A stretch of 64,000 bases of DNA from Rebecca billardiae RCC1528 (Eukaryota; Protista; Haptophyta): NCBI GenBank assembly GCA_965240325.2, contig OZ251236.1, positions 1,798,001 through 1,862,000 on the forward strand, in the 5' to 3' direction. The notes beneath the pieces are model-generated. The model was not told the DNA's origin. It made no database searches and saw nothing but the letters and a program-made list of their open reading frames with translations. The translations under genes and the position numbers were made by a program. This document shows positions 34,837-57,502 of this stretch, one piece after another. How positions within the stretch are numbered: position 1 is the stretch's first letter; every line of letters begins with the position of its first letter.

Positions 34837-34936
34837 TGACGATATATATCGTCGTCGTCATCGATGCTGACCTGCCAGAGCAGTGATGAGATCTATACCA
34901 CCTGCCAGTGATGAGATCTATACCACCTGCTGCGCA

Positions 34937-37697
34937 TTACTGCTGCTGATCGTCGTCGGGCGGGCGCGATTGCACCCAGGCGCCCGAGGGCGTGCCCGTG
35001 GGCCGCGGCGCCGGAACACGCGCGCGTGAGCCGTTGGATGCCCAGCTTTGCCCGCTGTCGAAGAGGCTGCAGCTCGACTTGCGCGACCCACTCGCACGCT
35101 GGCCGCTGTCGAGAGCACGCTGCACTTGATCGCTCACGCTCGGCAGGTGCGGCTGCTCGCTCGCCCCGCGCAAAGACGCCGAGGCAGAAATGTCGCGGAC
35201 CTCGCCGTGCGTCGCGTGGCCGCTGTCGTCGGAGGCTTGGGGCGAGGGCGCAGCCGCGCGCGCCGACATGTGCGCGATGCGCACAATGGTCGAGCACGAG
35301 CCGTCGGCCAAGCTGCTGTTGATCAGGCCGCTCTCCAGCGTGGCCTCGGGCAGCAGCGGGCTGCCCAGCAGCGGGCTGCCCAGCGCGCTGCCAAGGCGCA
35401 TCGACGAGCGCAGGCCACGCATGGACAGGCTGCCCTCCTCCTGCGCGCCAACCCGGCTGTTCAGCCCGCGCAGCGCGTGGCGCACGCGCTCGTTGAACGC
35501 CTCCGCGCCACCGGAGGACGCCTGGATCACCGCCAGCAGCCGCTCCGTGTCCGACTGCAGCGTGCAGCCCGACTCCATCACGTCGAAGTTGTCGAGGTAG
35601 TCGTCCAGCTCCCACCGGTACCCGCTCTCCACGTCCGACGCCGAGGCGGCGGAGCCGAGCAAGGTTGGCGCGGGGTGGGCGTGCGGGTGGGCGTGTGTGC
35701 CGCCGCTGGTGTCGAAGGGGAGGACCGCGCTGGCTCGCGCCGCGGCGCCCGCGTCGGTGGCCGGCGTCTGCGCTCCGGGCGCGCCTTCCGGCCACACCAC
35801 GGCCGGGTCGTGCCGCGCGTGGGGCGACGAGGGGCCCCCCTCCGGCACGGACGAGCGGCGCGGCAGCCTGCCGGCCGAGGCCACAGACGCGAGCTCGCAC
35901 AGCTCGATGCGCGCCCTGTCGCCGCCCATGTTGAGGAAGATGAAGAGCTCGACGACGCTGCGGGGCGCGGCGGAGAGGGGACGGGCGCGCGCGCGCGCGC
36001 GGCGTGGGGGCCGGTGGGCTCGGCGCGCGCGCGAGACAGCGCGAGGGCGGCGCGTGCGGCCGCCCCTTCCGTCCGGCGGCGCGGCGGCGGCGCGGCGGCG
36101 CGGCGGCGATACGGCGCGCGGCGGCTTGGCTCGCGCGCGCGCACCACCACAGCCGCGTGAGCAGCGTGGGCCCCATCAGCACGACGAGCTTCTGGCAGCC
36201 GGCCAGGTAGAGCGGCAGACACGGCAGCGAGTCCGAGATGTGCAGCGGGTCGAGGCACGCCTTGTCCAGCCACACCACCGGCTCGCGCCGGTTGGTGGCG
36301 ACAAACTGCACGCGCCACGCCTGCAGCGCCTGCCACTTCTCAGAAGCGTCGTCGTGCCACGAGTGCGTGACGAAGGCGTCGACGTCGCCGAAGCCGGCTC
36401 GGCGCGAGCGCGCGTGCAGCGCGGGCGCGGACGCCGCGCTCTGCATCTCGTCCTCGGCCACCAGGTCGAGCCGGATGCCGCGGAACGTGGCGAGCGCCAG
36501 CTCGTGCACCTCGTGCACGGGGCGCGAGTTGAGCAGCGCGGCGATGCCCGCCGCGACGCTCGCCGGCTCGCCGTGCGAGTCGAGCCACGCGTGCAGCGCC
36601 GTCCTGCGGCTCGGCGTGAGCAGCGCCGCCAGCAGCACCGCCTCCGCCATCGCGACGTACCTGCACACCAAGGCGACGCGCTGGTTCGCCCACAGCTGCG
36701 CCGCGGGCTGGCTGAGGTGGAAGAGCAGGGCAAAGCCGCACAGCAGCAGCGCAAACGACGCGTACGCACGGCGCACGGCGCGCCACAGCCCGTCGAGCTG
36801 CACGCGCGACGGGCTGTGCAGCCTGGACAGGATCTCCCGGATCAGCGCGAGCGCGACGGCCGCGCCGCCCGCCAGCACGCCCAGCGTGCCGATCTCGAAC
36901 CAGCACGGCACGAGCGGCAGCTCGGCGCCGCCGACGCGGCCGGTGTCTGCCGAGGCGGGGCAGCTCGGGTACGCGCTCAGCACGAGCGCCATCAGCTGGA
37001 CGCTCGCCCAGAGGTACCCCCCGAAGAGCAGCGTCGCGAGCAGCATGAACGCGTGCATCGTGTGCCGGATGTGCGCCACGTCGGTGGGCAGCAGCGAGAG
37101 CATCAGCACGGCCGCGCCCGGGAACAGCAGCGTCGCGCCGAGCGTGTTGGTGTACGCAATCTCGAGACCGGCGCCGGTCGCGCTGAGGACGACGCCCAGC
37201 GCGATCGTGGGGCGGTGCACGCGCGACGAGAAGCGGCGGCCCGCCAGCTTGGACGCCTCGAGCGCCGAGCGCACGCCCGCCTCCGTGCGCTCGGGCGGCG
37301 GCGGGCGCACGCCCGAGCGCCGCCGCTCGACAGAGGTCCGCTCGCGCGCGGCGGCGGAGGTCCGAGACCGCGGCCGCGACGACCAGCGCCGGCCCAGGCC
37401 AAAGAGCGAGAGCTCGAACGAGCCCTTCTTGCGCACGCGCTTCTGTGACCGGCTTCGCTCCCCCAGCACCCGCGCTGACTGCGACCTCGCGCCAGGCAGC
37501 CCCTTGCGCGCCGCCCCTGAGCGCGCCTGCTGCGCGCTCGACGCTCTCTCGCGGCTGATCGCCCCCGATGGCACGGGCGCCGTCGCGGCTCTCTCGCGGC
37601 TGATCGCCCCCGACGCCACGGCCGCCGTCGCGATGCTGCCCGTGCCCCCCCCAGGGCGGGCCTCAGCGTTCGGAGCCGCAGGAGCGCGGGCCGGCAT
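34937..37697 (-). CDS. Multi-pass membrane protein with cytoplasmic TIR-like domain; 1 intron (35958-36144)
   Basis: About 6 hydrophobic helices, then DAFVTHSWHDD...VWLDKACLD...LPCLPLYLAGCQKLVVLMGPTLLTRLWC|VVELFIF (TIR-like fold pattern). First ATG at 37697. Confidence 0.78.
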
Positions 37698-38231
37698 GCC
37701 GCGCTCGGCAGTCGGCAGAAGGGCGAGCCTCGCGCTCGGCGCGGCAATGCACGTGCCCAACCTAGGCGCTCAGCGCCAGCGGCTCGGCGCGCGCTGGCGT
37801 GTGCTGGGCCCGGCACCGTCGGGCGTCGGCCAGGCCGCCGCGCACGGTGGGGCGTTGATGGCGCAGGCACTGCCGACTAACTACCCTCGCCAGTCGCCCA
37901 CCCTGGTCCGACAACTAGTCATTATGAGCGTTACGCTCGACACCGCTTGAACGTCTCTCTACAGTCCTGTACTAATTTGAAGCACACTCAGCTCAGATAC
38001 CAATCAGACTCTCACCTTATTGGCGAAGACCGTTTGGCGGAAGCTGCGCGCGGTTCATCGAATATATGGGATGGGCCTGACTGGGCGGTATCCGTGGCTG
38101 CGGGTAAAATCGGTTGCCGCGAGGCTTAAGACTCGCCTACAAACCTTCTAGAAGAAAAGGGGTATTATCTCGTCACACCGGGCTTGGTGGGCAGCCCGGT
38201 GTGACGAGCTCGCTCAAAGTGCTCCACAACC

Positions 38232-41200
38232 ATGGGCGTTCTGGCCCTCGGGCTGGGCCTAACGGCGCTCGTCGTCTCGGCCGTGCACCCGGGCCCGCTG
38301 CTGGGCGTGGGCAGTCCGGGCACATTGACATCGATTGTGTCTGGCACGACTCACACCTGTGTCCTCGACGACACCGGCGCGGTGAAATGGTGCGCTCGCG
38401 CCATCGCGCGCGCGCCGGCGCCGCCATCGCGCCGCTGATCAGCGGCCGCGGCGCGCGTGCGATGCGCGCGCGACGCTTGCTGCGCCGAGCAGCTTCGGCC
38501 TCGGCAGCTCCGGCCAGCTAGGCTATGACGACACCGTCGACCGCGGCGACGACCCGAACGAGCTCGGCGCCAACCTGCCCTTCCTGTCGATGCCGGACGG
38601 CACCACGGTGGCCGACCTGTCTGCGGGCGGCGCGCACTCGTGCGCGGTGCTCTCGGACGCGACGGTCAGATGGTGCGTCTCCCGCGCGCGCGCAGCGGCG
38701 GCCACCACCGCCCGTCCCACCCCGCTCCGCGAGGCGTGCATCGCGCCGCCCACACCGCGCGTTTGTGCACGCGCACGCGCCGCCCGCCCGCCTCGCACCG
38801 CCATCAGTTGGGGCGCCAACGACCAAGGCCAGCTCGGCACGGGCGACAAGACGGCCGCCGGCGACGGCGCCGGCCGAGCGATGGGCAACACGCTGCCCGC
38901 GGTCAACCTGGGCGGCTCCGCCACGCCGCACGCCGTGCGCTGCGGCTCGTTGCACACGTGTGCGCTCACGAGCATCTCGTCGGTGCTGGGCGTGCAGTGC
39001 TGGGGCGACGCGAGCAAGGGCCAGCTGGGGTACGAGGCGAACTCGGACCTGAGCACGCCCGGGGGGCACGTCGATCTGGGCACGGGGCTCACGCTCAGCG
39101 CGTTCGACACGCACTTCGGCGTGCACAACTGCGCCGTTTTCTCCGACGGCAGTGTCAAGTGGTGCGCGCGCGCGTGCTCTTGTCTCGGCGCGCCGCCGCC
39201 CTTTGGCCGCGGTGCGCTCGGCTCCACGCGCGCGCGCGCCTGCCCCGCCCCCGCCCGCACCCTCCCGCGCGCGCGATCGCGCAGCTGGGGTGACAACGCC
39301 GGCGGGCAGCTCGGCACGGGCGACAAGTCGCGCTACGGCCGCACCCCGAACACGATGGGCGACGACCTGCCGTTTGCGCTCGGCTCGGGCGCGGCCGAGG
39401 TGCGCGTGGGCAGTGAGCACTCCTGCGCGCGGCTGAGCGCAGGCGGGCTCAAGTGCTGGGGCGCGGGGACGAGCGGCGCGCTGGGCTCGGCCGCCACGGC
39501 CGACATCACCGACCCCTCGCTCTCGCCCGTCATCGGGCTGGGCTCGGCCCTCAGCCCCACCTCGCACTCTGCTGGCCTCAGCTTTGGGTGCGCCGTGCTC
39601 ACGGGCGGGCTGCTCAAGTGGTGTGCGCGGCAGTGGCGCCCCGCGCGCGAGCGGCGCGCGCGTGGTGTGCCTGCGCGCGCGCTCGTCACGCGCTCGACCG
39701 TCGCCCCGCGTCGCCCGCTCGCCCTCGGCCGACCACGCACGCCGCCTGCGCTGACCCGCCGCACGGCGCACGCGCGCTCGCGCGTGCGTGGTCGGGTCTG
39801 CGCGCGCGTCGCAGCTGGGGCGCGGCCGCCGAGGGTCAGCTGGGCACGGGAGACACGGCCGACCGCGGCGACGCGTCCAACGAGCTGGGCGACTTCCTCC
39901 CGCCGGTCTCGCTCGGCACGGGCCTCACGGCGGTGATGGTGGCCGCGGGCGAGACTGCGGCGTGCGCGCTGCTCAGCAGCGGCTCCTTCAAGTGGTGCGC
40001 GCGCGCGCTGGTGCGCACGCGCGCCAAGGCCCGCCGAGACGCGCGCTTCGTGCACTCGCCGCCGTCGGTGGCGGGCCGCGTGCGCGCGCGCCCGGCTCGC
40101 GTGGCGTGGCGGGATGGGGCCGTGCGGGCTGGCGCAGGGCGCAGTCCGCCAGGGCGCGCGCGCCTCGCGCCTCACGCCGCCGCGTGCGCCGCCTCGGCCC
40201 TGCCCCCGGGGCCCCGCTCCCTCCTGCTCCCGCCTCTGCGTGGCCGCCTCTGCGTGGCGCCACGCGCAGCTTTGGCAAAGCGGACAAGGGCCAGCTCGGC
40301 ACGGGCGACACTTCCAACCGCGGCGACACCGCGGGCACGCTGGGCGACTCGCTGCCTTCGGTCGCACTGACAGATGCGCCGCCACCGAGCCCGCCTGCGC
40401 CGCCGCCCTCACCGCCGCCGTCTCCGCCGCCGAGCCCACCGCCGAGCCCGCCGCCGAGCCCGCCGCCGAGCCCGCCGCCGTCACCGCCTCCGCCGAGCCC
40501 TCCGCCCTCGCCGCCACCGTCGCCGCCGCCCTCGCCGCCACCTTCGCCGCCGCCCTCGCCGCCGCCGAGCCCGCCGCCCTCGCCGCCGCCCAGCCCGCCG
40601 CCCTCGCCGCCGCCCAGCCCGCCGCCCAGCCCGCCGCCACCTTCGCCGCCGCCCTCGCCGCCGCCGTCGCCGCCCCCGAGCCCACCGCCGTCCCCACCGC
40701 CCTCGCCGCCTCCGTCCCCGCCACCGAGCCCACCGCCGAGCCCACCGCCCTCGCCTCCGCCTTCGCCGCCGCCTTCGCCGCCGCCCTCGCCGCCGCCGCC
40801 CAGCCCGCCTCCATCGCCACCGCCCTCGCCTCCGCCCAGCCCGCCGCCCAGCCCACCGCCACCTTCGCCGCCGCCCTCGCCGCCACCGTCGCCGCCGCCC
40901 TCGCCGCCGCCCTCGCCGCCGCCCAGCCCACCGCCCTCGCCACCGCCGAGCCCGCCGCCCTCGCCGCCGCCGAGCCCGCCGCCCTCGCCGCCGCCCTCGC
41001 CGCCGCCCAGCCCGCCGCCGCCCTCGCCGCCGCCCTCGCCGCCACCCTCGCCGCCACCGAGCCCACCGCCATCCCCACCGCCGTCGCCGCCTCCGTCGCC
41101 GCCACCGAGCCCACCGCCGCGCCCACCGCCCAGCCCGCCGCCGTCGCCACCGCCCTCGCCGCCGCCGAGCCCGCCGCCGAGCCCGCCGCCTCCATCGCCG

Positions 41201-44200
41201 CCGCCCTCGCCGCCACCATCGCCGCCGCCGAGCCCACCGCCCTCGCCGCCGCCCTCGCCACCGCCCAGCCCGCCGCCGCCCTCGCCCCCGCCCTCACCGC
41301 CACCGTCGCCGCCGCCGAGCCCACCGCCGTCCCCACCGCCATCGCCGCCTCCGTCCCCGCCGCCGAGCCCACCGCCGAGCCCACCACCCAGCCCGCCGCC
41401 CTCGCCGCCGCCCTCGCCGCCGCCCTCGCCGCCACCGCCCAACCCGCCTCCATCGCCACCGCCCTCGCCTCCGCCCAGCCCGCCGCCCAGCCCACCGCCA
41501 CCTTCGCCGCCGCCCTCGCCTCCACCCTCGCCGCCGCCCTCGCCGCCGCCCTCGCCACCGCCCAGCCCGCCGCCCTCGCCTCCGCCGAGCCCACCGCCCT
41601 CGCCGCCGCCGAGCCCGCCGCCGTCGCCGCCGCCCTCGCCGCCGCCCAGCCCGCCGCCGCCGTCGCCGCCGCCCTCACCGCCACCATCGCCGCCGCCGAG
41701 CCCACCGCCATCGCCACCGCCCTCGCCGCCTCCGTCGCCGCCCCCGAGCCCACCGCCGAGCCCGCCACCCAGCCCGCCGCCGTCGCCGCCGCCGTCGCCG
41801 CCGCCCAGCCCGCCGCCGAGCCCGCCACCGAGCCCGCCTCCCAGCCCGCCACCATCGCCGCCTCCGCCGAGCCCTCCACCCTCGCCGCCACCCTCGCCGC
41901 CGCCGAGCCCTCCGCCCTCGCCGCCACCGTCGCCGCCACCATCGCCTCCGCCCAGCCCGCCGCCCAGCCCACCGCCACCTTCGCCACCGCCCTCGCCGCC
42001 GCCCTCGCCGCCGCCCTCGCCGCCGCCGTCGCCACCGCCAAGCCCGCCGCCGTCGCCACCGCCGAGCCCACCGCCCTCGCCGCCACCGTCGCCGCCACCA
42101 TCGCCTCCGCCCTCGCCGCCGCCGAGCCCACCACCGCCCTCGCCGCCGCCCTCGCCCCCACCATCGCCGCCGCCGTCACCACCGCCCTCCCCGCCGCCCT
42201 CGCCGCCTCCATCACCGCCGCCAAGCCCGCCGCCGAGCCCGCCGCCCTCGCCGCCGCCGTCCCCGCCGCCGAGCCCACCTCCGAGCCCGCCACCCAGCCC
42301 ACCTCCTTCGCCGCCGCCCTCGCCGCCGCCCTCGCCACCCCCGCCGAGCCCGCCACCATCGCCGCCGCCCTCGCCGCCGCCTTCGCCACCGCCCTCGCCA
42401 CCGCCCTCGCCGCCGCCCTCGCCCCCACCATCGCCGCCGCCGTCACCGCCGCCATCGCCGCCGCCGAGCCCACCACCGAGCCCGCCACCCAGCCCACCGC
42501 CCCCGTCGCCCCCGCCATCACCACCGCCATCGCCGCCACCATCACCGCCGCCCTCGCCGCCTCCATCGCCGCCGCCGTCGCCACCGCCAAGCCCGCCCCC
42601 GAGCCCCCCTCCGTCGCCACCGCCGTCGCCGCCACCCAGCCCACCGCCAAGCCCACCGCCGCCTTCGCCGCCACCGAGCCCGCCGCCCAGCCCGCCGCCT
42701 TCGCCGCCGCCCTCGCCGCCGCCGAGCCCACCGCCATCCCCGCCGCCCTCGCCACCGCCCAGCCCGCCGCCACCCTCGCCGCCGCCCTCGCCGCCGCCCT
42801 CGCCGCCGCCAAGCCCACCGCCATCCCCGCCGCCCTCGCCGCCTCCGTCCCCACCGCCGTCGCCGCCGCCGAGCCCACCGCCCTCGCCGCCGCCATCGCC
42901 GCCGCCATCGCCGCCGCCCTCGCCGCCACCGCCCAGCCCGCCTCCATCGCCACCGCCCTCGCCTCCGCCGAGCCCGCCGCCCAGCCCACCGCCCTCGCCG
43001 CCACCAAGCCCTCCGCCCTCGCCGCCGCCCTCCCCGCCGCCGGCTCCGCCGCCGAGCCCTCCACCGAGCCCTCCGCCGAGCCCGCCCCCGCCCTCGCCGC
43101 CGCCGAGCCCGCCGCCCTCGCCGCCACCCAGCCCGCCGCCGTCGCCACCACCCAGCCCACCACCATCCCCACCGCCCTCCCCGCCGCCCAGCCCGCCGCC
43201 GCCCTCGCCGCCGCCTTCGCCGCCGCCCTCGCCGCCGCCATCACCGCCACCGAGCCCACCGCCGTCGCCGCCGCCCTCACCGCCGCCCTCGCCGCCGCCG
43301 TCTCCGCCGCCAAGCCCTCCACCGAGCCCACCGCCGAGCCCGCCACCGCCCTCGCCGCCGCCGAGCCCACCGCCCTCGCCACCGCCCTCGCCGCCGCCCT
43401 CGCCGCCACCCTCGCCGCCGCCCAGCCCACCGCCGAGCCCGCCGCCCTCGCCGCCTCCGTCTCCGCCGCCGAGCCCACCGCCGAGCCCGCCACCCAGCCC
43501 ACCTCCTTCGCCGCCGCCCTCGCCGCCGCCCTCGCCACCCCCGCCGAGCCCGCCACCATCGCCGCCGCCCTCGCCGCCGCCTTCGCCACCGCCATCGCCG
43601 CCGCCATCGCCGCCGCCCTCGCCCCCACCATCGCCGCCGCCGTCACCGCCGCCATCGCCGCCGCCGAGCCCACCACCGAGCCCGCCACCCAGCCCACCGC
43701 CCCCATCGCCGCCGCCGTCGCCACCGCCATCGCCGCCACCATCGCCGCCGCCATCACCGCCTCCATCGCCGCCGCCGTCGCCACCGCCAAGCCCGCCCCC
43801 GAGCCCCCCTCCGTCGCCACCGCCGTTGCCGCCACCCAGCCCACCGCCAAGCCCACCGCCGCCTTCGCCGCCGCCCTCGCCGCCGCCCTCACCGCCGCCT
43901 TCGCCGCCGCCCTCGCCGCCGCCGAGCCCACCGCCCTCGCCGCCACCGAGCCCTCCGCCCTCCCCACCGCCGAGCCCACCACCGTCTCCACCGCCCTCCC
44001 CGCCGCCCAGCCCGCCGCCACCCTCGCCGCCGCCCTCGCCGCCGCCCTCGCCGCCGCCAAGCCCACCGCCATCACCGCCGCCATCGCCACCGCCGTCGCC
44101 GCCGCCCTCGCCACCACCCAGCCCACCGCCCTCGCCGCCGCCCTCGCCGCCGCCCTCGCCGCCGCCCTCGCCGCCGCCGCCCAGTCCGCCTCCATCGCCA

Positions 44201-47200
44201 CCGCCCTCGCCTCCGCCGAGCCCGCCGCCCAGCCCACCGCCCTCGCCGCCCCCTCTGCCACCTCCCAGCCCGCCGCCCTCGCCGCCGCCCTCGCCGCCGC
44301 CAAGCCCGCCGCCGTCACCGCCCCCATCGCCGCCGCCAAGCCCACCGCCCTCGCCACCACCATCGCCGCCGCCTTCGCCGCCGCCGAGCCCTCCGCCCAG
44401 CCCGCCGCCATCACCGCCACCCTCGCCACCGCCCTCGCCACCTCCGAGCCCTCCGCCCTCGCCGCCTCCGAGCCCGCCGCCGAGCCCCCCGCCGAGCCCG
44501 CCGCCGAGGCCTCCGCCTTCACCACCGCCCTCGCCACCCCCGAGCCCACCGCCGTCGCCGCCGCCTTCGCCGCCGCCGTCGCCGCCGCCATCTCCGCCAC
44601 CGTCGCCGCCACCCAGCCCGCCGCCCAGCCCACCGCCCTCGCCACCGCCCTCGCCGCCGCCTTCGCCACCACCGTCGCCACCGCCCTCACCGCCGCCCTC
44701 ACCGCCTCCCAGCCCGCCACCCTCGCCACCGCCGTCGCCGCCACCGAGCCCGCCGCCATCGCCGCCGCCGTCCCCACCACCGAGCCCACCGCCATCACCG
44801 CCACCCAGTCCGCCGCCAAGCCCGCCTCCCTCGCCACCGCCATCGCCGCCGCCAAGCCCACCGCCGTCACCGCCGCCATCTCCGCCGCCAAGCCCGCCGC
44901 CCTCGCCACCGCCATCGCCGCCGCCTTCGCCGCCGCCGAGCCCTCCGCCCAGCCCGCCGCCGTCGCCGCCGCCCTCGCCACCACCGAGCCCGCCGCCATC
45001 ACCGCCGCCGTCCCCACCACCGAGCCCGCCGCCATCACCGCCGCCCAGCCCGCCGCCAAGCCCGCCTCCCTCGCCACCGCCCTCTCCACCGCCTTCGCCG
45101 CCGCCCAGCCCTCCGCCCAGCCCGCCGCCGTCACCGCCACCCTCGCCGCCGCCCTCGCCACCTCCGAGCCCTCCGCCCTCGCCGCCTCCGAGCCCGCCGC
45201 CCAGCCCCCCGCCCAGCCCGCCGCCGAGCCCGCCGCCTTCGCCGCCGCCGAGCCCTCCGCCCAGCCCGCCGCCGTCACCGCCACCCTCGCCGCCGCCCTC
45301 GCCACCTCCGAGCCCTCCGCCCTCGCCGCCTCCGAGCCCGCCGCCCAGCCCCCCGCCCAGCCCGCCGCCGAGCCCGCCGCCTTCACCACCGCCCTCGCCA
45401 CCCCCGAGCCCACCGCCGTCGCCGCCGCCTTCGCCGCCGCCGTCGCCGCCGCCATCTCCGCCACCGTCGCCGCCACCCAGCCCGCCGCCCAGCCCACCGC
45501 CCTCGCCACCGCCCTCGCCGCCGCCTTCGCCACCACCGTCGCCACCGCCCTCACCGCCGCCCTCACCGCCTCCCAGCCCGCCACCCTCGCCACCGCCGTC
45601 GCCGCCACCGAGCCCGCCGCCATCGCCGCCGCCGTCCCCACCACCGAGCCCACCGCCATCACCGCCACCCAGTCCGCCGCCAAGCCCGCCTCCCTCGCCA
45701 CCGCCATCGCCGCCGCCAAGCCCACCGCCGTCACCGCCGCCATCTCCGCCGCCAAGCCCGCCGCCCTCGCCACCGCCATCGCCGCCGCCTTCGCCGCCGC
45801 CGAGCCCTCCGCCCAGCCCGCCGCCGTCGCCGCCGCCCTCGCCACCACCGAGCCCGCCGCCATCACCGCCGCCGTCCCCACCACCGAGCCCGCCGCCATC
45901 ACCGCCGCCCAGCCCGCCGCCAAGCCCGCCTCCCTCGCCACCGCCCTCTCCACCGCCTTCGCCGCCGCCCAGCCCTCCGCCCAGCCCGCCGCCGTCACCG
46001 CCACCCTCGCCGCCGCCCTCGCCACCTCCGAGCCCTCCGCCCTCGCCGCCTCCGAGCCCGCCGCCCAGCCCCCCGCCCAGCCCGCCGCCGAGCCCGCCGC
46101 CTTCGCCGCCGCCGAGCCCTCCGCCCAGCCCGCCGCCGTCACCGCCACCCTCGCCGCCGCCCTCGCCACCTCCGAGCCCTCCGCCCTCGCCGCCTCCGAG
46201 CCCGCCGCCCAGCCCCCCGCCCAGCCCGCCGCCGAGCCCGCCGCCCTCACCGCCGCCCTCGCCACCCCCGAGTCCACCGCCGTCGCCACCGCCTTCGCCG
46301 CCGCCCTCGCCGCCGCCATCACCGCCACCGTCGCCGCCGCCATCGCCCCCGCCATCGCCGCCGCCATCACCGCCGCCATCGCCACCGCCATCGCCTCCGC
46401 CAAGCCCACCGCCCTCGCCACCGCCCTCGCCGCCGCCTTCGCCACCACCCTCGCCACCACCGTCACCGCCGCCCTCGCCGCCTCCCAGCCCGCCACCCTC
46501 GCCACCACCGTCGCCGCCACCAAGCCCGCCGCCATCGCCGCCGCCGTCCCCACCACCGAGCCCACCGCCCTCACCGCCTCCCAGCCCGCCGCCAAGCCCG
46601 CCTCCCTCGCCACCGCCCTCGCCGCCGCCGTCACCGCCGCCATCGCCTCCGCCGAGCCCACCGCCGTCGCCACCGCCCTCTCCACCACCTTCGCCGCCGC
46701 CGAGCCCTCCGCCCAGCCCGCCGCCGTCGCCGCCTCCGAGCCCGCCTCCAAGCCCCCCGCCCAGCCCGCCGCCCAGCCCGCCGCCTGCACCGCCGCCAAG
46801 CCCACCGCCCTCGCCACCGCCCTCGCCGCCGCCTTCGCCACCACCGTCGCCGCCACCGTCACCACCGCCCTCACCGCCTCCCAGCCCGCCACCCTCGCCA
46901 CCGCCGTCGCCGCCGCCAAGCCCCCCGCCATCACCGCCGCCATCTCCTCCGCCGAGCCCGCCGCCCTCGCCACCGCCGCGCCCGCCACCATCGCCACCTC
47001 CAAGCCCGCCGCCATCGCCACCGCCATCGCCGCCGCCCGCGCCACCGCCTTCGCCACCCCCCTCGCCGCCACCGGCTCCGCCGCCGAGCCCGCCCCCTTC
47101 GCCACCGCCCTCGCCGCCACCTTCGCCGCCGCCCTCGCCGCCGCCATCTCCGCCACCGCGCCCACCACCGAGCCCGCCTCCCAGCCCGCCACCGAGCCCA

Positions 47201-49709
47201 CCGCCCAGCCCACCGCCGAGCCCGCCACCATCACCGCCCCCGAGCCCACCGCCGAGCCCACCGCCAAGCCCTCCGCCCAGCCCACCTCCCAGCTCGCCAC
47301 CGAGCCCCCCACCGAGCCCGCCGCCGACTCCACCGCCAAGCCCTCCGCCATCGCCACCTCCCGGCCCGCCGCCGAGCCCATCGCCATTGCCGCCGCCATC
47401 GCCACCGCCAGGGCCGCCACCATCGCCGCCGCCGAGCGTGCCGCCGAGCCCGCCGCCGAGCCCGCCGCCGAGCCCGCCGCCGAGTTCGCCGCCGCCAAGC
47501 CCGCCGCCGTCTCCGCCGCCATCTCCGCCGCCGAGCCCGCCGCCGGCGCATCCGCTGCCACCGCCGTCCCCGCCGCCGCCGTCGCCGCCGCCGAGCCCGC
47601 CGCCGAGCCCGCCGCCGAGCCCGCCGCCGCCGCCGCGCGCAGAGCCGTTCCCGCCGCCGTCCCCGCCGTCAGCGCCGCCGTCGATGCCGCCGCCGTCCCC
47701 GCCGCTGCCGCCCTTCCCGCCGCCGCCGAGCCCGCCGCCGCCGCCACGCACCGAGCCGTTCCCGCCGCCGCCCGTGCCCAGCTCGCCCCCGGCCGCGCCC
47801 CCCTTGCCGCCGCCCACGCCGCCCCCGTCCACGCCGCCGCTGCCGCCGCGCGCGCCGCCGCCGCCGCCTTACCTCAGAGCGACGGTCGAGTCGGTCACGC
47901 CGCGCGGCGCGCCGCTCAACGGCAGCGACACGCTGCTCACGCTGCGCGGCGCGGGCTTCCTCGCGCTGCCGGGCAACGACAGCTGCGCGTTTGGCGCGCC
48001 GCCCGCGCCCGGCGCGCCCTTTGTGCGCCTCGCGTCCACAGCCGCCACGGTGCGCGCCGCGGACGAGGCGGAATGCGCGGTGCCGGCGCGCTCGGGGCAG
48101 CTGGCCGCGGGCGCGTTCGAGGTGCGCCTCGTCCTCGACGGCGGCGAGTACGTCGTGCCGCCGCTCTTCGACCCGCTGCGCGTGACGCTGTACGACGCGG
48201 CCGACGTGCGCGTCGAGTCGCTCGAGCCGGCCGCCGGGCCGGTGGGCGGCGGCACGGCGGTGACGCTGGCGGGCGCGGGCTTTGCCGAGTACGGCGAGGG
48301 CCAGCTGTGCTGCGTGCTGCCCGGCGTGGACGCGCGCGCGTGCGCGGCGCCGGCGACGCTGCTGCCCTCGATCGACGGCGCGAGCCGCGCGCGCTGCGTG
48401 CTGCCCGCCGCGCCGGGCGGCGGTGCGGGCGCGTTCGCCCTCGCCCTCTCGCTCGGCGCCGCGCGCGCGGGCAGCAGCTCGGCCACGACCCGCCTCTTCC
48501 ACTACTACGCACAGCCGCTCGTCCACGCGACCAACCCGTCGTCGGGCAACCCGGGGCTCTCCGTGATCGTGAGCGGCTCGGGCTTCGACGCCCTCCGCGC
48601 CGCCGGCCTGCTCGGCCTCATCCGCGTCGGCTTTGGCGCGGACGGCCCGCCGATCCCTCCGGTGGTGCTGGACGGTCGTGCGCTGCTCGTGCAGACGGCC
48701 GGCTCGGGCGCGGAGGGGCCGCAGCAGGTGCGGCTCGCGCTGAACGGGCAGCAGTTCGCGCCCGCGGCGGGGCTGCCCGAGGCCGAGGGCGGCGTGTACT
48801 TCACCGTGATCGGGCTGCACGCGCCCGCGCTGCTGCGCGCCGCCTTTGACGGCCGCGCGACTTCGCTGCTGCTCGAGTTTGACGGCCAGCCGACCGACCG
48901 CGCGGGCATGCCCTCGGGGCTGTCGGGCTGTGAGGCCGTGCTGGACAACGCGACGCTCGCGCTCGTGCGCGGCGCGCCCTCCGCGCCCGAGCCCGCGTGC
49001 TACTGGGCGCACGACTCCGCGCTCGTCGTGCAGCTCAACCCGCAGACCGCGCTCGCGCCCGGCGCGAGCGTGCGGCTGCGCGAGCGCGTGCTCGCGCCCG
49101 CCGCGTGCGCGCCCGCGTGCGACGCGTCGCTGCTCGGCGTGGGGCTGGCGGCGAGCATCGACGTGGACGCGCCGTGCGGCCCGAGCACGCCGTGCCCGAC
49201 GCCCGTCGCCGCGCTCAGCGCGCCCGCCGCCCTCTCGGCGTGCGCCAACGAGACGCTGCGCCTCGACGGCACCGCCTCCAGCGGCGGCGGCATCGTGCCG
49301 CTGGCCTTTGAGTGGCGCGTCGAGCGCTCGGCGACCACGGCGGAGGAGGCGGAGGTGGCGGCGGTGGAGGCGCAGCTGGCCGCGCTGCCCGCGCGCAGCC
49401 CCGTCGCCACGCTGCGCATGCCGCGCGGCGGCACCGCGTGGGGCTTCGCGCTGCGCGTCTCCTCCTTCCTCGGCGCCACCTCGGAGCCTTTCACGCACGT
49501 GGCGGCGCGCGCGGCCACGAGCGAGCTTCTGCTGGCGATCGATGGGCCCGCGCTGCGGCCGGCGTGGCCGTCGGAGGCGCTGGTGCTCGAGGCGTCGACG
49601 CAGCAGCCCGACGGCTGCGGCGGCGGCGAGCACGCGCCCGAGGGCGAGCTCGGCTTCGCGTGGCGCGTCGTCGCCGTCAGCGCCATCGCGAGCGGCGACG
49701 GCGACGGCG

Positions 49710-49744
<35 letters not shown>

Positions 49745-51205
49745 TCTGCGAGTGGCAGCGGCGCGCCGCTGCTGCCCGAGCTGAGCGGCGCGGCCTCGAA
49801 CGCGCTGGTGCTGCCGCCGTACTCGCTGAGCGCGCGGTACGCGTACGTGTTCGAGGTGCGCGCGACCGACCAGGGCGCGGGCGCGGGCGCGACCCCCGCC
49901 TCGGGCGCCGCGCGCGTCACCGTCGAGGTGGGCACGCTCCCGCTGCGCGCTCTGATCGCGGGCGGCGACCGCACGCTCGGCGCGCTCGAGCCCTTCCACG
50001 TCGACGCGTCCGCGTCGACGGACCCGAACGTGGCGGCGGGCGCGGCCGCGCTGCGCTTCGGGTGGAGCGCCGCGCGCGTGCTCACGGGCGACGAGGACCT
50101 CGACGCGCTCGAGCCCGCCGCCTCCCTCAACCTGACGGCGGCGGGCGCCGAGCCGTCCTCGGCCGTGCTGACGATCCGGGCACTCGCGCTGCCGCTCGGC
50201 CAGTACAGAGTGCGCGTGCGCGTGTGGAGCGCGGACTTTGCGGAGCCGGCGAGCGCGAGCGTGCGCGTGACGATCGTGGCGGGCGTGCTCCCCATCCTCA
50301 CCTTCGCGCCGCTGCCGCGCCCCAAGTACAGCCCCACCTTCGAGCTGCCCGAGCACAGGCTCGTGATCTCGACCTCGCTCGACGCCACGTCTGCGAGGCT
50401 CGAGGCGCGCGGCGTGCTCGCGTACAGCTACGCGTGGCGCGCGCTGCTCGTCGGCGCGGACGGCGCGCTGGCCGACGCGGGCGTCGAGCTGAGCGACACG
50501 GCGGCGGTGACGAGCACCGGCGCGTCGGGCCCCACGCTCGCCTTCCGCTCGGGCGCGCTGGCCGCGGGCGCGCTGTACGTGTTTGAGCTCACCGTCAGCG
50601 GCGGCGACGCGCCCGCGCTCGGCTCGGTGCGCGTGCAGATGAACCGCCCGCCGTACGGCGGCGGGCTGAGCGTGGAGCCCGACGTCGGGATCGCGCTGTT
50701 CACGCGCTTCGCCCTCGCCGCGTCGGGCTGGACCGACGACGCGGACGACCTGCCGCTGCAGTACGCGTTCGAGCACGCGCCCGCGGCCGCGGACGGGGGC
50801 TTTGCGCTGCCGCGCGCGGACGGCTCGGGCGGCTCGGCGAGCGTGCTGCGCACGCGCGGCCTCAGCCCGCACCTCTTCGACGTGCTGCTCACCGCGGGGA
50901 ACCGCTCGGTGCGCGTGGCGGTCGAGGACGCGTGGGCGGCGGCGGCGAGCGCGTACGCGCCCGTGCGCGTCGAGCCGCCGCTGCGCGAGCTGGGGTCGGA
51001 CGCACAGGCGGTGTACGCCTCTCTGCTCGCGCAGGCGCGCGGCGCGGTGCAGCGCGGGCACGCGCAGCTGGCGTACCAGCTGCTCGACGCGCTCGTCTGG
51101 CTCGTCACGGACGCGTACGGCGGCGGGCGCGGCGGCGGCGGCGGCGGCGGGGACGGCGGTGGCGGGGACGGCGGCGGCGACGGCGGCGGCGCCCTCGCGC
51201 AGCCC

Positions 51206-51242
<37 letters not shown>

Positions 51243-54200
51243 TGCTGGTGGCGGGCGCGCTGAGCGCGGCCGAGCTGGAGGAGGCGCGCGACGCGCTGCT
51301 CGAGATCAGCATCGGCGCGGCGGGCATCACGGCGCGCACGCCGTCGGGGCTGGCGCAGGCGATCGGCTCGCTCGCCTCCGTGCTGGACGCGCCCATCCGG
51401 CTGAGCGCGCGCGCGGCGGCGGACGTGCTGCAGCACGCGGCAACCCTCGCGCGCGAGGTGGCGAGCGTCGGCGCGGCGCGCGGCGCGGCGAGCGCGCTCG
51501 CGAGCGCGACCGACGGTGCGCTGAGCCGGGTGGTCGGGCTCTCGGCCGAGGCGGCGGCGGCGCTCGCCGACGCCGCCGCCGGCGCGATCGACGCGATCGG
51601 CGTCGCCGCGCTCGTCGGCTCCGTGGTGGGCGAGGCCGCGGTGCAGCTGCGCGGCGAGACGCTCAACGTGAGCGCAACGCGGCTGCGCGCGGACGAGCTC
51701 GCGGCCGGGCGGTGGATCCCGGCGGTGGGCGCGCACGGCGGGCTGCTCGTGCGCGCGGAGGTGCTCTCCTTCCTGCGCAACTACTCGCTCGCCACCGGCG
51801 TCGACGTGGTCCTCACCTCGGTCTCGCGCGACCTGCGCACGGCCGCGGCCGAGGCGGAGGGGGGCGCGCTCGCGGGCGGCGAGGGCGGCGCCGTCGAGGT
51901 GCTCACGCACGTCTTCACCGTCACGCTGCGCGCGGCGGGGGGCGCCGAGCTCGAGGTCGCGGGCCTGCCGCGGCCGCTGCTCATCGCCGTGCCGCCGCTC
52001 GACGGGCTCGTACCCGCCGCCGTGCGCGACGCGGCGGAGTGCCGCTTCTGGGCGGCGCGCGGCGGCGGCGGCGGCGGCGGCTGGAGCGCGGACGGCTGCG
52101 GAGTGGCGGAGACGCCGTCCGCGGCGGAGACGCTCGAGGGGGCGGGCGGCGCGGACGGGCTCTCGGCGCTGCCGATGCTCTTCTGCGCGTGCGACCACCT
52201 CACCGAGTTCGCGGGCCTCGGCGTGCGCCCCGAGCCGCCCGCGCCCGAGCAGCCCGAGGGACAGCGGGCGGCGCCCGTGGTGGCGGTGCTCGCGCCGCCG
52301 GCGCAGCAGCGCTCGGGCATCGAGCGCGTGGCGATTGCGGCGGCGGCGGCGCTGAGCGCGCACACGGTGCAGCGGGTGGTCTACCTGCTGGTCGCGATCA
52401 ACATGCTGCTGCTCGGCTTTGCCGCGCTCGCCGAGCGCCGCGCGCGCGCGCAGCACCGCCGCTGGTACCGCGTGCTGCGCGCGGCGACCGGCGCGGCGTC
52501 GGCGCCCGAGCGCGGCGGCGTGGGCGGCGCGGCGCTCGGCGAGCTCGAGCGGCGCGGGGCGGAGGCGCGGGAGGCGTACGAGAGGTCCAAGGAGCTGCTC
52601 GCCGAGCAGCTCGCGGAGGGCGCCGCGGCGCTCGCCAGCACCGTCCCCACCGTCCCCAGCCCGCGCTCACTCCGCCGGGGCGGCGCCTCGCCGTTTGCGG
52701 GGCGGCGCGCGGGCGGCTCGGCCTGGGCGGGGCGGCGCGCGGGCGGCGCGGGCGCGGACGTGGTCGTGCCCGTGCGCGCACACTGCCGGCCGGGCTCCGC
52801 CGAGGGCTTGCTCGCGCCGGCGGCGTTCGCGCCGCAGCTGCCGCGGCCGCCGCCGTCGCCGCCGCCGTCGCCGCCGGCACAGCCGCAGCCGCAGCCACAG
52901 CCGCAGCCGCACCCGTCGCGCGAGCGCGCGCGCGCGCGGCCGGCGGTCGGTCCGCGCGCCAGCGCCGCCCTCGCCTCCGCCTCCCTCGACGAGACGACGA
53001 GCAGCGGCGGCAGCGAGCACGACGACGACGAGGACGCGCGCAGCGAGGGCTCGGCGACGGGGCTGGTGGCGGTGCATCCGGAGGGGCGCGACGACGAGGA
53101 CGACGACGCACCGATGGGCGCACCGGCACCGCATCGCGCAACAGCCGTCGTCGCCGGCGCCGGCGCCGGCCGCGCGGACGGCAGCGCGCCGCAGGCGCGG
53201 GCGGGGCCGCAGGGGTCACAGCCGGGGTCGCAGCAGGGCGCGCTCCCCGCGTTCAGCTTTGCCGTCGACAGCGCCGCCGAGCGCCACGCGCGCTCCCCGC
53301 CCGCCTCGCCCTCGGCGCCCGACGGCGCGCGCGTGTGCGCGCGCCCGTGCTCTCGCGCGCTGTGCAGCGCTCTGTGCAGAGCTGCGCTGTCGCTGCTGTG
53401 CGCCGAGCACTCGGTGCTCTCCGCCGTGCTCATCCCCACCGACCAGCCGGCGCAGCGCGCGCTGCTGCTGCAGAGCGCGTGCTCCACGCTGCTCGCGCAG
53501 CTCGGCGTCGCCATCTGGCTGTACGGCGGTGGCGGCGGAGAGCCGCCACCGCCTGCGGACGGCCCGGCGCGCGGTCTGAGCGCGGGCGCGGCCGTGGGGG
53601 CCATGCTGGCGGCGGGCGGCGTGTGCCTGCTCGGCACGGCGGCGCTGCGCGCGGCGCTCGCGTCCGCTGCCGAGCCCGGCCGGCCGAGCGCGCGGCTGTA
53701 CGCCGCGCTGCGCTCCGCGGTGCAGCGCACGCACGGCGTCGAGCTCGAGCTGCTCTGGCGCTCGGCCGCGGACACGCAGCGCGTGGCGGCGCTGGTGGCG
53801 CCCACGCGCGCGTTTGCCCTCCGGCTCGAGGCGCTGGTGTTCGTGCTGCAGGCGCAGGGGGCGCAGGCGGCGCGACACACGCCGCGGCGCTCGCCGCGCG
53901 GCGCCGACGCGCCGGCGGCGCGGGCGAGGGCGCCGGCGGGCAGCGCGGGCGCCAGCCCCGCCTCCAGCGCGGGGCCGCGCCGCTCTCGCGCCGACGCGCC
54001 GCCCAGCCCTGGCGGTCGCGTGCGCACGGGCGCGCCGCAGAGCCCGCGCAGGGCGTGGGGCGCGCCGCCTCCCGCCGCGTCGGAGCGGGTGGTGCCCACG
54101 GCGCGGCAGCCGGCGCCGCGGCCGGGCGCGGACGAGGCGGCGGCGCCGCTGCCGCCGACGCCACTGCTGCCGCCGACGCCGCTGCTGCCGCCCTCGGCGC

Positions 54201-55333
54201 GGCCGCAGCACCCGCTGCTCGGGCGGCGCGCGTCGCTGCCCGCGCGCCCTGGCGCGCCGCCGCCGCCGCCGCCGCCGCCGCACGCGCACCCGACGGGGCG
54301 GCGCGCGTCGCTGCACCAGCGCCAGCTGCAGCTGCTGGCGGCAGACCCCGCCGGCGCGTGGGGCGCGGAGGGCGCGCCGCGCTGGGGCGCGGAGAGCGCC
54401 CGCCTCCGGCGCGTTGGCTCGATGCCCGAGCTGACAGTCCGGCCGGTCCTGCCGCCCTCGGGGCCGCGCGTGCACGCGAGCGCAAACGCGCCGCCGCCGC
54501 GCGCGTCCCCGGGCAGGCTCGCGGCCGTGACGCCCGAGCCGCCGCCCTCGCCGCCGCCCTCGCCGCCGGCCTCGGCGCCGCGCGAGCCGCCGCGCGAGCT
54601 GCAGGGCGCGCGGCGGCTCTCGAACGGCGCGCCCCTCCCCACGGTGAGCGCGGAGGCGAAGGCGGCCGCGCGCCGCGTGAGCGCGACCGCCGCGCGGCTG
54701 TCGCGCGCCGCCTCCTCCTCGAGGCGCGCGCGCGAGGTCTCGGCGCTGTGCACGCTGCTCGCCGCGTTCGCGCTCGACGCGGGCCCGAGCGAGTGGCTGG
54801 GCGCGCGCGTGCTCGGCGCGCTGATGACCGAGCTCGCAGACCCGCTCACCCCCTTCGAGCTGCGCGCGCTGCTGCGCACGTTTGACAGCGCGCACAGCGG
54901 GCGCGTGGCCGAGGCCGAGCTGGTCGGCTGGTACGCGTTGGGCTTCGAGGCGGAGCGGGGGCGAGCGGGCGGGTGGCGGCGGCGCGCCGCGGCGTGGGCG
55001 CCGCCGCCGCGCGCGCGCGCGCCGCTCTGCTGGGCGCTGCTGCTCGGCGGCACCGCCGGGCTCGCCGCCGGGCTGATCGCGGTCGGCGACCGAGTGCCGT
55101 CCGAGCGGCTCACGCCGATGCTCAACGCGTGGGGCGCGGCGCTCACGCTCGCGCTGTGCGTGCTCGAGCCCGCCGGCCTCGTGCTCGCGGGCTGGGCGCT
55201 GCCCGTCGCGCGCGGGCGCGCGCGCCGCCGCGTGGGCGCGCGCGCGCTCGGCGCGGCGGAGGCGGAGGCGGAGGCGGCGTCGCCAACGCCGGGCGGCCCG
55301 GCGCAGGCTCCGCGCTATCCAGAGCCCGCCTAG
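38232..55333 (+). CDS. Giant (~5,423 aa) polycystin-1/REJ-like cell-surface protein: signal peptide, 7 RCC1 repeats, (SPPP)n extensin rod, ~3 IPT/TIG, REJ, GPS, TM helices, EF-hand-like loop
   Basis: Exons 38232-38389, 38493-38672, 38808-39161, 39285-39620, 39815-39994 and 40270-55333 total 16,272 nt in frame. RCC1 motifs GxxHxCA...KCWG..GQLG. IPT motifs ESVTPRGAPLNG/EPAAGPVGGGTAVTLAGAGF. REJ motif NRPPYGG...GIALFTRF...GWTDDADDLPLQYAF. GPS motif CRFW...WSADGC...CACDHLTEFA. Confidence 0.85.
40378..47870 (+). repeat. Coding minisatellite: ~12-bp units encoding Ser-Pro3/Ser-Pro4 (~7.5 kb)
   Basis: Continuous in-frame SPPP repeats with synonymous variation. Confidence 0.98.
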
Positions 55334-55532
55334 TCCATCAGCGGGCGGCGGCCGCCAGCGCCACACGAGCGAGCTCTGTGCGGACGCTGCGGACGATGCT
55401 GATGCTACAGTATTATATAATAGACGATCGTCATATACATATATATATATCAGCAGCATCGCCACGGCATATATCGCCGCCGTCATATATCGTCGTATCA
55501 TCATATATATGTATATATATATGATGCGCGCA

Positions 55533-56561
55533 TCATCAGCATCGTCAGCATCGTCGTCAGCATGCACTACTGGGTCTGCGCCATCACTCATCAGCACCGG
55601 CATCGGCACCACCATCTGGCCCATCATCGTGGTGCTGCCGCCCTCCGCCTTGATGTTCACGTCGAAGAAGCAGCAGATGCGGTTCTGCTCGCCGAGCGAG
55701 ACCGACTTGCCGGACCCGATGACGATCCGCGGGTAGCCGTTGCCGCTGTTCGGCTGGATGTCCAGGCGCGAGAGCGAGCCGGCCGCCTTGATCATCGGCA
55801 GCCCATCCTTCATCGTGACGAGGTCGCTGGTGCCGCCGCCCTTGAGGGAGACGAGGCGTACGGTCGTCTGGCTCATGTCCCTCTCGGTCAGGGTGAAGGC
55901 CTCCGCCGGGTAGGTTGTTGAGCCTGGTCGAAGGTCCCGACGACCACGAAGACGGAGGCAGCTCGTTCATCGACGAGATGTGCGCGTGGCTGCCCATCGT
56001 CATGTTGGCCACCATGCCGACGAGTCCACCGAGGCGCGCAGCGTCAACAGGTGGAGGTGCGTCATACTCGTAGCCGGGCTTGAGCACGCGAATGCCAACG
56101 TGAGCGTGCAGCTTCTCTCTCTCCTGGTGCAGCGATTGGCTAGCGCACCGCGGGTTCTCTTCGATACACTTGCTCACCAACGCCTGCAGTTGGACTCGGC
56201 TTGCGACTGCCTCGGGGCTTGTGACGATCTTGCCGACAAGCTCCCCGACGCCGAGGAGGTCACCGTCGTCGCCATGCGGGCAGAGAGTAAACTTCAAGAA
56301 CGCGTGGCCGTTGACACCCCCCTGCCTGCGGCTGAGAAACCGCAGGTTCCAATCGTCGGCGCCCGCAAGGGCACGCTTCAAGTCGATGGGGATCGAGCGC
56401 TTCCTCCTGCGGTAGCAGCAGGGCTCATGCGGAGTCTCATTGAGCGAGACCCACAGCAGTGTTAAGCCGGCAGCGTCTTGATCTCCACGCTGGTCGTCCT
56501 CGCGCCAGTCCGTGTCCTTGTCGTCGGTGCAGTGAATGGGGTACGCGTACAGATGCGACAT
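55533..56561 (-). pseudogene. Unknown protein, frame-disrupted (pseudogene or unresolved intron)
   Basis: Two protein-like minus-strand segments in different frames (MSHLYAYPIHC... and ...AEAFTLTERDMSQTTVRLVSLKGG...ICCFFDV). No typical GTGCGC..GCAG intron joins them. Confidence 0.35.
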
Positions 56562-56729
56562 CGTCGGTCGCGGACGGGCCGGCCGGGTCGAAGTCGTCGC
56601 CGAATGTTGCTGGCGACCGGTTGTTTTGACCGCGCGGCCGAGGGCTGGGCGCGGATTTCGGAACCAGTCCGGGCCTGTCCGGGGCGCAGAGGTTGCGAGA
56701 AGTTGCGACCCAAGCTCACGAGCGACACG

Positions 56730-57502
56730 ATGGCTCCTCGTCGACGCGGCGTGCGCCTCATTACTGCCGCACTGCTCCTCGGCTGCGGGGTGCTGGCAGG
56801 TGGAGATCCGGTGGTGCGCAACGGAGACCACGCCCGTGCCGAGGCAGTCGGATACCTGCGACGAGCCCTCGCGTACGTCTCGGCCCTGGGCTCCTCGACG
56901 GGCGCAGCCGTGGACGCGGTGGGTAGCTCCATCGACCAGCTGCAGCACGAGGCGGACGCGGGCGCGTTCGAGCGGAAGGTCGCGCAAATCCACGTGGACA
57001 TTCAGGCGCTGGCGAGCAGATCGTCGCCCTCGCGCTCGACGACGAGCGCCGAGCAGTCCGCGGACGAGTCGGTGGGCGGGGAGCCGCCGCTGCTCACGTC
57101 GTTTGTCTCGTGGGCGCTCGACCGCCCGGTGCCGTGGGAGCGGGACTGCAGCTGTTGCTACCCGTTCTGCCCCGCGGACAGGTGGTGCATTAAGCAGGGG
57201 GACAAGCGCTTCCTCGCGTGCGCCGGCCTCTCCGTCCGCCAACACCTGCGCATCGCCTTTGCAGACCAGTGCGCGCACACCGCGCCATGCGCCGTGCGCC
57301 GTGCGCGTGCGCCAAGCTGCCGACCTCACGCGCGCGACCTGCCCTGCCCACCGTGTGCCGCAGCCCTCGCATCTCGCTGGTCCTCGTGGGCATCGTTGTG
57401 ATCGTCGTGCACCTCTCCTTCAGTGCGCCGGCAAGTGCGCCGAGTGAGCGGCCACGTCGAGCCAAGGCCAGCTCTGCCAAGCAGAAGGCCAAGGCCTCCT
57501 GA
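56730..57502 (+). CDS. Small type-I membrane protein with Cys cluster and C-terminal KxKxx motif; 1 intron (57269-57363)
   Basis: Signal peptide, CSCCYPFC...WC. Splicing yields DHPRISLVLVGIVVIVVHLSF...KQKAKAS*. Confidence 0.7.

Follow-up and report, generated by a model that had tools for sequence, protein, structure and literature searches.

What kind of protein is encoded where coding sequence for an RCC1 propeller, a long Ser-Pro repeat and a polycystin-1-like receptor base follow one another in the genome of the haptophyte Rebecca billardiae RCC1528? The locus occupies positions 38232-55333 of a 64,000-nucleotide window (assembly GCA_965240325.2, contig OZ251236.1, positions 1,798,001 to 1,862,000), the whole stretch of DNA analysed here; positions below refer to this window, and every part of the gene lies on its forward (+) strand. 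It apparently holds an intact gene for one 5,423-residue surface protein, predicted to consist of an N-terminal RCC1 head, a 2,499-residue Ser-Pro(n) (SPn) tract, TIG, REJ and GAIN/GPS modules, and a base of five transmembrane (TM) helices. Polycystin-1 is a major human disease protein, and the function of its ectodomain is still debated. The gene is of interest chiefly as a member of an apparent family.

The predicted gene model comprises six exons (38232-38389, 38493-38672, 38808-39161, 39285-39620, 39815-39994 and 40270-55333), which join into 16,272 nucleotides, or 5,423 codons and one terminal stop (55331-55333). The frame is open throughout, and the spliced product has exactly the length that a preliminary description of the locus had given as about 5,423 residues. 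The start ATG is found at 38232, with an in-frame stop 10 codons upstream. A single frame remains open from 39788 to 55333, and upstream of it RCC1-like coding sequence is interrupted by five GT..AG introns (38390-38492, 38673-38807, 39162-39284, 39621-39814 and 39995-40269). All five are in phase 2: each splits, after the second base, the Cys codon of the x-K/R/Q-C|[WF]-G blade motif. Introns thus occupy the same codon position in successive RCC1 blades, while two of the seven blade boundaries are intron-free; they measure 103-275 nucleotides, and each begins with GTG[CT]G and ends with CAG. An introner-like origin was considered and rejected, as the introns share no sequence similarity with one another.

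Base composition follows the model closely. Guanine-plus-cytosine (GC) content across the gene region is 0.70-0.86, with a strong C-over-G skew at 40.4-47.8 kb. Stretches of 200 nucleotides with GC below 0.64 are frequent between genes elsewhere in the window; within the model area they occur only at 37801-38300 and 55301-55700, that is, at both gene ends, and GC falls to 0.43 immediately after the stop codon. Downstream of the repeat and up to the stop codon, the exon-6 frame has GC of 0.96-0.97 at third codon positions (GC3) and 0.60-0.70 at second positions (GC2). Exons 2-5 show the same contrast (GC3 0.81-0.95 versus GC2 0.53-0.65), whereas the five introns are flat. The 2,487 codons downstream of the tract contain no stop, against 21.4 expected from base composition (P ~5e-10); the other five frames over this part contain 2-36. 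By these measures of the DNA itself, the coding status of the locus is well supported.

The first exon (38232-38389) encodes the start codon, a hydrophobic signal-like N-terminus (residues 1-19, hydropathy peak 1.96, V-S-A preceding residue 18) and the propeller's closing strand, for which there is a partial match to RCC1_2. Exons 2, 3, 4 and 5 each match Pfam RCC1 above the cut-off, and together with the five introns they span 38390-40269 and carry six blades. The beginning of exon 6 (40270-40372) supplies the first half of blade 7 and runs directly into the tract, as read from the frame and the motif FGKADKGQLGTGD; this segment combines with the N-terminal strand of exon 1 into the closing blade. 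The seven C[WF]G motifs that anchor the blades are spaced 54-64 residues apart. Exon 4 alone has UVR8 (2e-10) and HERC2 RCC1-like domains as its best matches among PDB sequences. The signal peptide and the seven RCC1 blades proposed in the preliminary description are both recovered, the former as a signal-like N-terminus judged by eye from hydropathy.

The Ser-Pro3 tract (40373-47869) contains 1,866 Pro and 590 Ser among its 2,499 residues and makes up 46% of the protein. Tandem Repeats Finder reports 602 copies of a 12-nucleotide period, and the units include 547 SPPP and 27 SPPPP. The tract itself had been recognized before, with about 600 SPPP-type units; the count is corrected here to 583 Ser-led units among 633 in total. 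SPPP is encoded by 94 distinct 12-mers, Ser codons are divided between TCN (366) and AGY (224), and nucleotide self-identity is only about 71-73%. Since one frame is maintained over 7.5 kb, every length change must have been a multiple of three. Frame retention combined with such heavy synonymous variation argues for selection on the peptide, unlike what is expected of a non-coding microsatellite or an intron.

The tract is not uniform along its length. In the first ~310 units (40373-44200) SPPPP returns at intervals of about 12 units, or at times of 4, 8 or 16, followed by ~290 units of near-pure SPPP (44200-47000) and a final ~60 units that decay to mixed Pro-rich sequence. An exact direct internal duplication of at least 869 nucleotides at 44513/45377 (44513-46245), offset by 864 nucleotides or 72 SPPP units, points to a recent internal expansion, or to a spot where the assembly needs checking. 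No Tyr occurs among the 2,499 residues, and hence there are no YXY or VYK cross-link motifs. The tract is therefore extensin-like only in its SPn motif, so that the earlier label 'extensin rod' holds for this motif and fails for the Tyr cross-links. The rise of a polyproline-II helix is 0.31 nm per residue; if the whole tract adopts this conformation, as comparable sequences do, the rod would measure ~0.78 micrometre.

Continuity between the tract and the receptor base determines where the head would reside. Between the tract and the first TIG domain, no Met precedes a hydrophobic segment, and this stretch has neither a low-GC gap nor a start codon; in contrast, the short paralogue P0002 opens with a signal peptide of its own immediately before its TIG domains. 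To our knowledge, the REJ/GAIN part is extracellular in all known proteins. As it has no signal peptide of its own here, it could enter the lumen of the endoplasmic reticulum only by way of the N-terminus at 38232, which would place the RCC1 head outside the cell by topology. An extracellular head had already been suggested, and the predicted topology supports it. Known eukaryotic RCC1-like domains are mostly intracellular.

Downstream of the tract, IPT/TIG domains (47870-48817, three by eye) score 33.9 bits against Pfam TIG (cut-off 20.9) and align with the TIG regions of P0002 and of a JGI protein, P0001. The REJ module (48818-51085) matches Pfam REJ (PF02010) with an E-value of 6.4e-35 over profile positions 35-450 of 452 (416 covered), and is 33% identical to that of each of these two relatives. 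It is followed by a GAIN domain with a helical and then a beta subdomain (51086-52372), in which Pfam GPS scores 24.0 bits (cut-off 22.5). The GPS motif C..W..W..C..CxCxHL|T at 52184-52210 retains all four Cys, both Trp and H-L|T-x-F, with cleavage predicted between 52201 and 52202; 12 relatives all share the H, L, T and F. An AlphaFold2 model of the stretch from REJ to TM1, built on a five-row alignment, shows six helices and then a beta-rich half, at a predicted local distance difference test (pLDDT) of only 55. The ten best PDB matches of this model are all adhesion-GPCR GAIN domains (E-values 1.9e-6 to 1.6e-3), and on the model the GPS lies in a true GAIN fold. Pfam matches and direct reading of the motif thus agree with the preliminary description, which had named IPT/TIG, REJ and a GPS with intact H-L|T.

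Five hydrophobic helices follow the GPS in a 1+2+2 spacing, and their flanks obey the positive-inside rule, being Arg-rich on the predicted cytoplasmic sides. TM1 (52376-52438, hydropathy 2.45) leads into a cytoplasmic flank rich in Arg and a loop of low complexity, with ~340 residues separating it from the TM2-TM3 hairpin. The latter is preceded by an A-E-H-S-V-L-S...Q-R motif recognized in alignments and by profile (53402-53647; TM2 53462-53524, TM3 53576-53647). After a further ~460 residues, a TM4-TM5 hairpin (55025-55195; TM4 55025-55087, TM5 55130-55195) carries a W...E-P motif whose W, E and P are invariant in the alignment of relatives, and a short Arg-rich tail leads to the stop. Cytoplasmic loops of hundreds of residues connect the helix pairs, whereas the TM4-TM5 loop has ~15 residues and no pore loop. 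Over the 1,049 C-terminal residues, counted from the GPS, no Pfam family matches at E <= 0.1, and PLAT, PKD_channel (PF08016), Ion_trans and 7tm are all missing. 'Several' TM helices and no obvious PLAT or channel domain had been noted in the preliminary description, and both statements stand, with the number of helices now set at five.

The relationship of this base to polycystin-1 rests on spacing and two short motifs. The 1+2+2 arrangement is common to the relatives and to TM1-5 of a Xenopus polycystin-1-like protein. A seven-sequence protist TM2-3 profile matches that protein at residues 3257-3341, its TM2-3 just after PLAT, and pairs H-x-x-L-S...R-x-Q-R with the polycystin-1 motif; the match is weak (3.9 bits, E-value 0.004 against this single protein) and was reached by none of 1,000 shuffles. 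The same profile also matches a Pythium REJ protein (7e-7). A TM4-5 profile likewise aligns with residues 3586-3647 of the Xenopus protein, its TM4-5, again weakly (0.7 bits, p ~0.02), with the E-P of the 'LEP' helix in register. Both motifs had been noticed previously (H..LS...QR before TM2, LEP in TM5), and they align in collinear order with the vertebrate polycystin-1-like TM2-3 and TM4-5, in matches that are weak and consistent in position. The five-helix base is probably, but not provably, the N-terminal half of the polycystin-1 membrane domain.

Within the cytoplasmic TM3-TM4 loop, a stretch at 54737-54965 aligns with the intact EF-hand pairs of four paralogues (P0002, P0004, P0007 and P0008) and is read as an EF-hand-derived pair, which the preliminary description does not mention. 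The model of an intact paralogue pair reaches a pLDDT of ~89, with calmodulin as its match. The pair in R. billardiae has degenerated and probably does not bind Ca2+. In an Atlas feature search, EF-hand and IQ clusters were the sole matches, with scores up to 0.67; HMMER, run exhaustively with the 1,049 C-terminal residues, found just two short fragments, each of which comprises TM4-5 and the EF-hand region.

The nearest database proteins are P0001 (39% identity) and two proteins of Diacronema lutheri (29-36%). Over the TIG-REJ-GAIN part the identity of all three is 36-39%, and their lengths are 2,088-2,989 residues. The D. lutheri proteins, KFE25_001592 and KFE25_002410, are annotated merely as 'EF-hand domain-containing protein', and the genome of this species has a GC content of 73%, similar to that of the window (PMC8379373). 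These relatives share TIG, REJ, GPS and the five-helix base with its EF-hand pair, but they have no RCC1 head and no SPn tract, and their EF-hands are intact. At the N-terminus they carry instead their own signal peptide (P0002) or a different repeat (P0001). P0001 ends without TM4-5 and is probably a truncated gene model. In P0004, from D. lutheri, one GPS cysteine pair has been lost (C-G-A-R-H-L-T).

Stalks on related bases are found elsewhere. P0003, a protein of 4,026 residues from an ENA assembly, has a head, ~200 Pro-rich residues and then TIG-REJ-GPS; this protein and P0004 both have IQ-like motifs and intact EF-hands in their cytoplasmic loops. Two marine metagenome contigs (L012, 1-1600; L013, 1-1860) encode at least 490 residues of SP3-4 repeats followed immediately by an EGF-like Cys-rich module, a GPS and TM1. 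Their repeats are broken by Y-P-P-G/D-x-A-P spacers, no REJ precedes the GPS, and the contig sequence stops within the stalk. Oomycetes, pelagophytes, a chrysophyte-like alga and an amoebozoan also have REJ/GPS proteins, which are more distantly related. From these comparisons, the gene seems to be one member of a family that has stalk-less D. lutheri paralogues and SPn-stalk metagenome relatives, a point not made in the preliminary description, and the head appears to be an exchangeable part of the family chassis. Public gene sets seem to overlook such giant repeat genes or to leave them unannotated. On either side of the gene, long open reading frames on both strands (34893-37950 and 55584-57447) have no Pfam match. 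Searches of NCBIfam yielded no useful match.

Taken together, we consider it moderately probable that one gene produces a giant membrane glycoprotein with its N-terminus outside the cell, in which a propeller sits on a stiff rod joined to a self-cleaving GAIN anchor and a five-helix stub. In the secretory pathway, the prolines of the tract would be hydroxylated and glycosylated, giving a stiff polyproline-II rod that displays the propeller, as a putative ligand- or glycan-binding head, ~0.8 micrometre from the membrane. Such a rod is physically plausible because the Chlamydomonas protein MST3 shows rods of this kind on a polycystin-type anchor (PMC11015965). The GAIN domain may cleave itself at HL|T, so that the whole ectodomain would be held non-covalently on the stub. 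Pulling on the head, or binding to it, could then strain or shed the ectodomain, an event that the stub and its cytoplasmic loops would read out. The resulting structure may be a hair on the flagellum, a filament of the haptonema or cell body, or a coat; the preliminary description had proposed a flagellar hair, haptonema or cell-surface filament protein with a mechanosensory or adhesion module.

Several observations weigh against this proposal. The signal peptide, assessed only by eye, lacks a basic n-region. A 240-nucleotide stretch at 53870-54110 is the sole part of exon 6 without GC3-over-GC2 periodicity; it encodes Arg/Ala/Pro/Ser-rich low complexity within the TM3-TM4 loop, and a codon-position GC scan of the C-terminal loops for hidden introns flagged this place alone, where an intron was rejected for want of plausible GT..AG signals. 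Searched against PDB sequences, the TM2-3 and TM4-5 profiles gave matches at chance level only and did not find polycystin-1. An AlphaFold2 model of a paralogue TM module reached a predicted template modelling score of 0.27, and Foldseek matched it only to calmodulins, by way of the EF-hand pair. The weak profile matches and the lack of confirmation from PDB and structure searches are the reason why the origin of the base is graded as probable rather than proven. The EF-hand pair of the window protein has no Pfam EF-hand match. In the length classes searched, a collection of 5.8 billion proteins holds no identical or near-identical protein. A query with the 5,020 residues of exon 6 (REJ region; candidates of 2,761-8,785 residues) also gave no match, and it missed P0001 and P0003 too, so that this result is read as a word-sampling miss and not as absence.

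The same features could be explained by a mainly structural role, an unlikely alternative. The protein would then be a hydroxyproline-rich filament associated with a coat, hair or scale, in which REJ, GAIN and the five helices act as an anchor or release device without signalling, and GPS cleavage sheds the rod into the coat. A near-pure SPPP tract amounting to almost half of the protein would suit such a role, as would the decay of the EF-hand pair in this copy and the failure of Pfam to recognize a channel, PLAT or other signalling domain, and the MST1/MST3 filaments of Chlamydomonas are structural polymers (PMC11015965). However, distant relatives have kept all five TM helices and their motifs, beyond the needs of a simple anchor, paralogues retain intact EF-hands and IQ-like motifs in cytoplasmic loops, and the tract offers no Tyr motifs for cross-linking. 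The base might instead pair with separate PKD2-type channel subunits, with the rod serving as a gating tether, which we regard as quite improbable. Polycystin-1 does pair with polycystin-2, and it joins the channel tetramer through its C-terminal six-helix half. Equal helix spacing and the weak homology to polycystin-1 TM2-3 and TM4-5 agree with such a complex, and MST3 provides a precedent, as it pairs with PKD2 and SIP (PMC11015965); yet by Pfam the six-helix half is absent from the window protein, and the TM4-TM5 loop is too short to hold a pore loop.

A wrong gene model or assembly is considered very improbable. Stops are rare at 80% GC, so the RCC1 and REJ parts could be separate genes, the tract could be partly spliced out, or its length could be misassembled. 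In this direction point the other frames of the tract, which are also open for 2,600-2,900 codons, the exact duplication of at least 869 nucleotides, and short paralogues that start just before their TIG domains. Against it stand the frame and amino acid repeat kept over 7.5 kb despite heavy synonymous variation, the continuation of blade 7 into the tract within one exon, the stretch between tract and TIG with no low-GC gap, start codon or signal peptide, and the stalk-plus-GPS relatives found elsewhere (P0003 and L012/L013).

If the gene is expressed as predicted, it would provide a natural 'minimal' polycystin-1 base whose output cannot be its own pore, and it would display an RCC1 propeller extracellularly, an unusual arrangement for a eukaryote. 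It would also supply candidate proteins for the surface hairs of haptophytes. Knob scales and fine hairs on the flagella are features of pavlovophytes; a literature search on pavlovophyte hairs found no relevant description. Tentatively, and with considerable doubt, the family may be viewed as micrometre-long haptophyte 'antenna' receptors, with interchangeable heads, hydroxyproline rods, and self-cleaving REJ-GAIN on a channel-less half-polycystin with a Ca2+-sensing loop. These would constitute the fine surface or flagellar hairs of pavlovophytes and act as force or contact sensors. Should this be true, then together with MST3 it would make filament anchoring an ancient and general job of polycystin-type membrane domains.

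Among known systems, the polycystin-1 family (PKD1, PKD1L1-3, PKDREJ and sea-urchin REJ) shares with the window protein the order REJ, GAIN/GPS and TM1, the 1+2+2 helices and, in weak alignments, H-x-x-L-S...R-x-Q-R before TM2 and L/E-E-P in TM5. In contrast, the window protein lacks the PLAT domain in loop 1, the channel-like half of TM6-11, the TOP domain, and the PKD, C-type lectin and LRR modules of the polycystin-1 ectodomain, and it bears instead an RCC1 head on an SPn rod of 2,499 residues, together with a TM3-TM4 insert derived from EF-hands. Sea-urchin REJ1 and REJ2, accepted members of the family, are also without the C-terminal six-helix half. Adhesion GPCRs, like the window protein, have a large adhesive ectodomain and a GAIN domain whose HL|T site immediately precedes TM1, but their seven TM helices belong to the secretin-like class, whereas five helices and no 7tm match are found here.

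Extensins and the hydroxyproline-rich rods of Chlamydomonas and Volvox, such as agglutinins and GP1, have the same Ser-Pro(3-4) repeats, which in these proteins become arabinosylated polyproline-II rods (PMC11015965). Compared with extensins, the Ser-Pro3 tract is without Tyr cross-link motifs, exceeds the typical length several-fold, and belongs to a membrane-anchored and not a wall protein. Algal REJ-GPS multi-TM candidates are already known. Ectocarpus Esi0130_0068, a surface protein of male gametes, is a proposed recognition receptor (PMC4700764); with 1,427 residues and 6-7 predicted TM helices, it has neither a stalk nor a propeller head. The preliminary description had held the overall architecture to be unfamiliar, and a literature search likewise found no description of an extracellular RCC1 head, of a 2,499-residue SPn rod on REJ/GAIN, or of a five-helix base without PLAT and channel that has an EF-hand-derived loop.

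Proline rods on polycystin-type anchors are also known, and by analogy MST3 is the nearest counterpart in function and design. In 2024, a flagellar hair of a green alga was identified as a hydroxyproline rod whose anchor is a polycystin-2-like domain (PMC11015965). MST3 forms glycosylated polyproline-II helices over hundreds of nanometres on a polycystin-type five-helix anchor, and has seven SIP-binding paralogues with LRR, SRCR, SEA and other heads (PMC11015965). Both proteins thus combine a large variable extracellular head, a long poly(hydroxy)proline rod and five polycystin-type TM helices, a number that leaves the N-terminus outside. Their anchors differ, however. That of MST3 is a PKD2-like channel domain which lacks S1, has a pore loop and is completed by SIP, and MST3 carries no GPS, while the window protein would be held by a polycystin-1-type REJ-GAIN-TM1-5 base without a pore loop. 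In a haptophyte-like lineage unrelated to green algae, a rod of similar or greater length appears to have been joined to the polycystin-1 type of base without its channel half.

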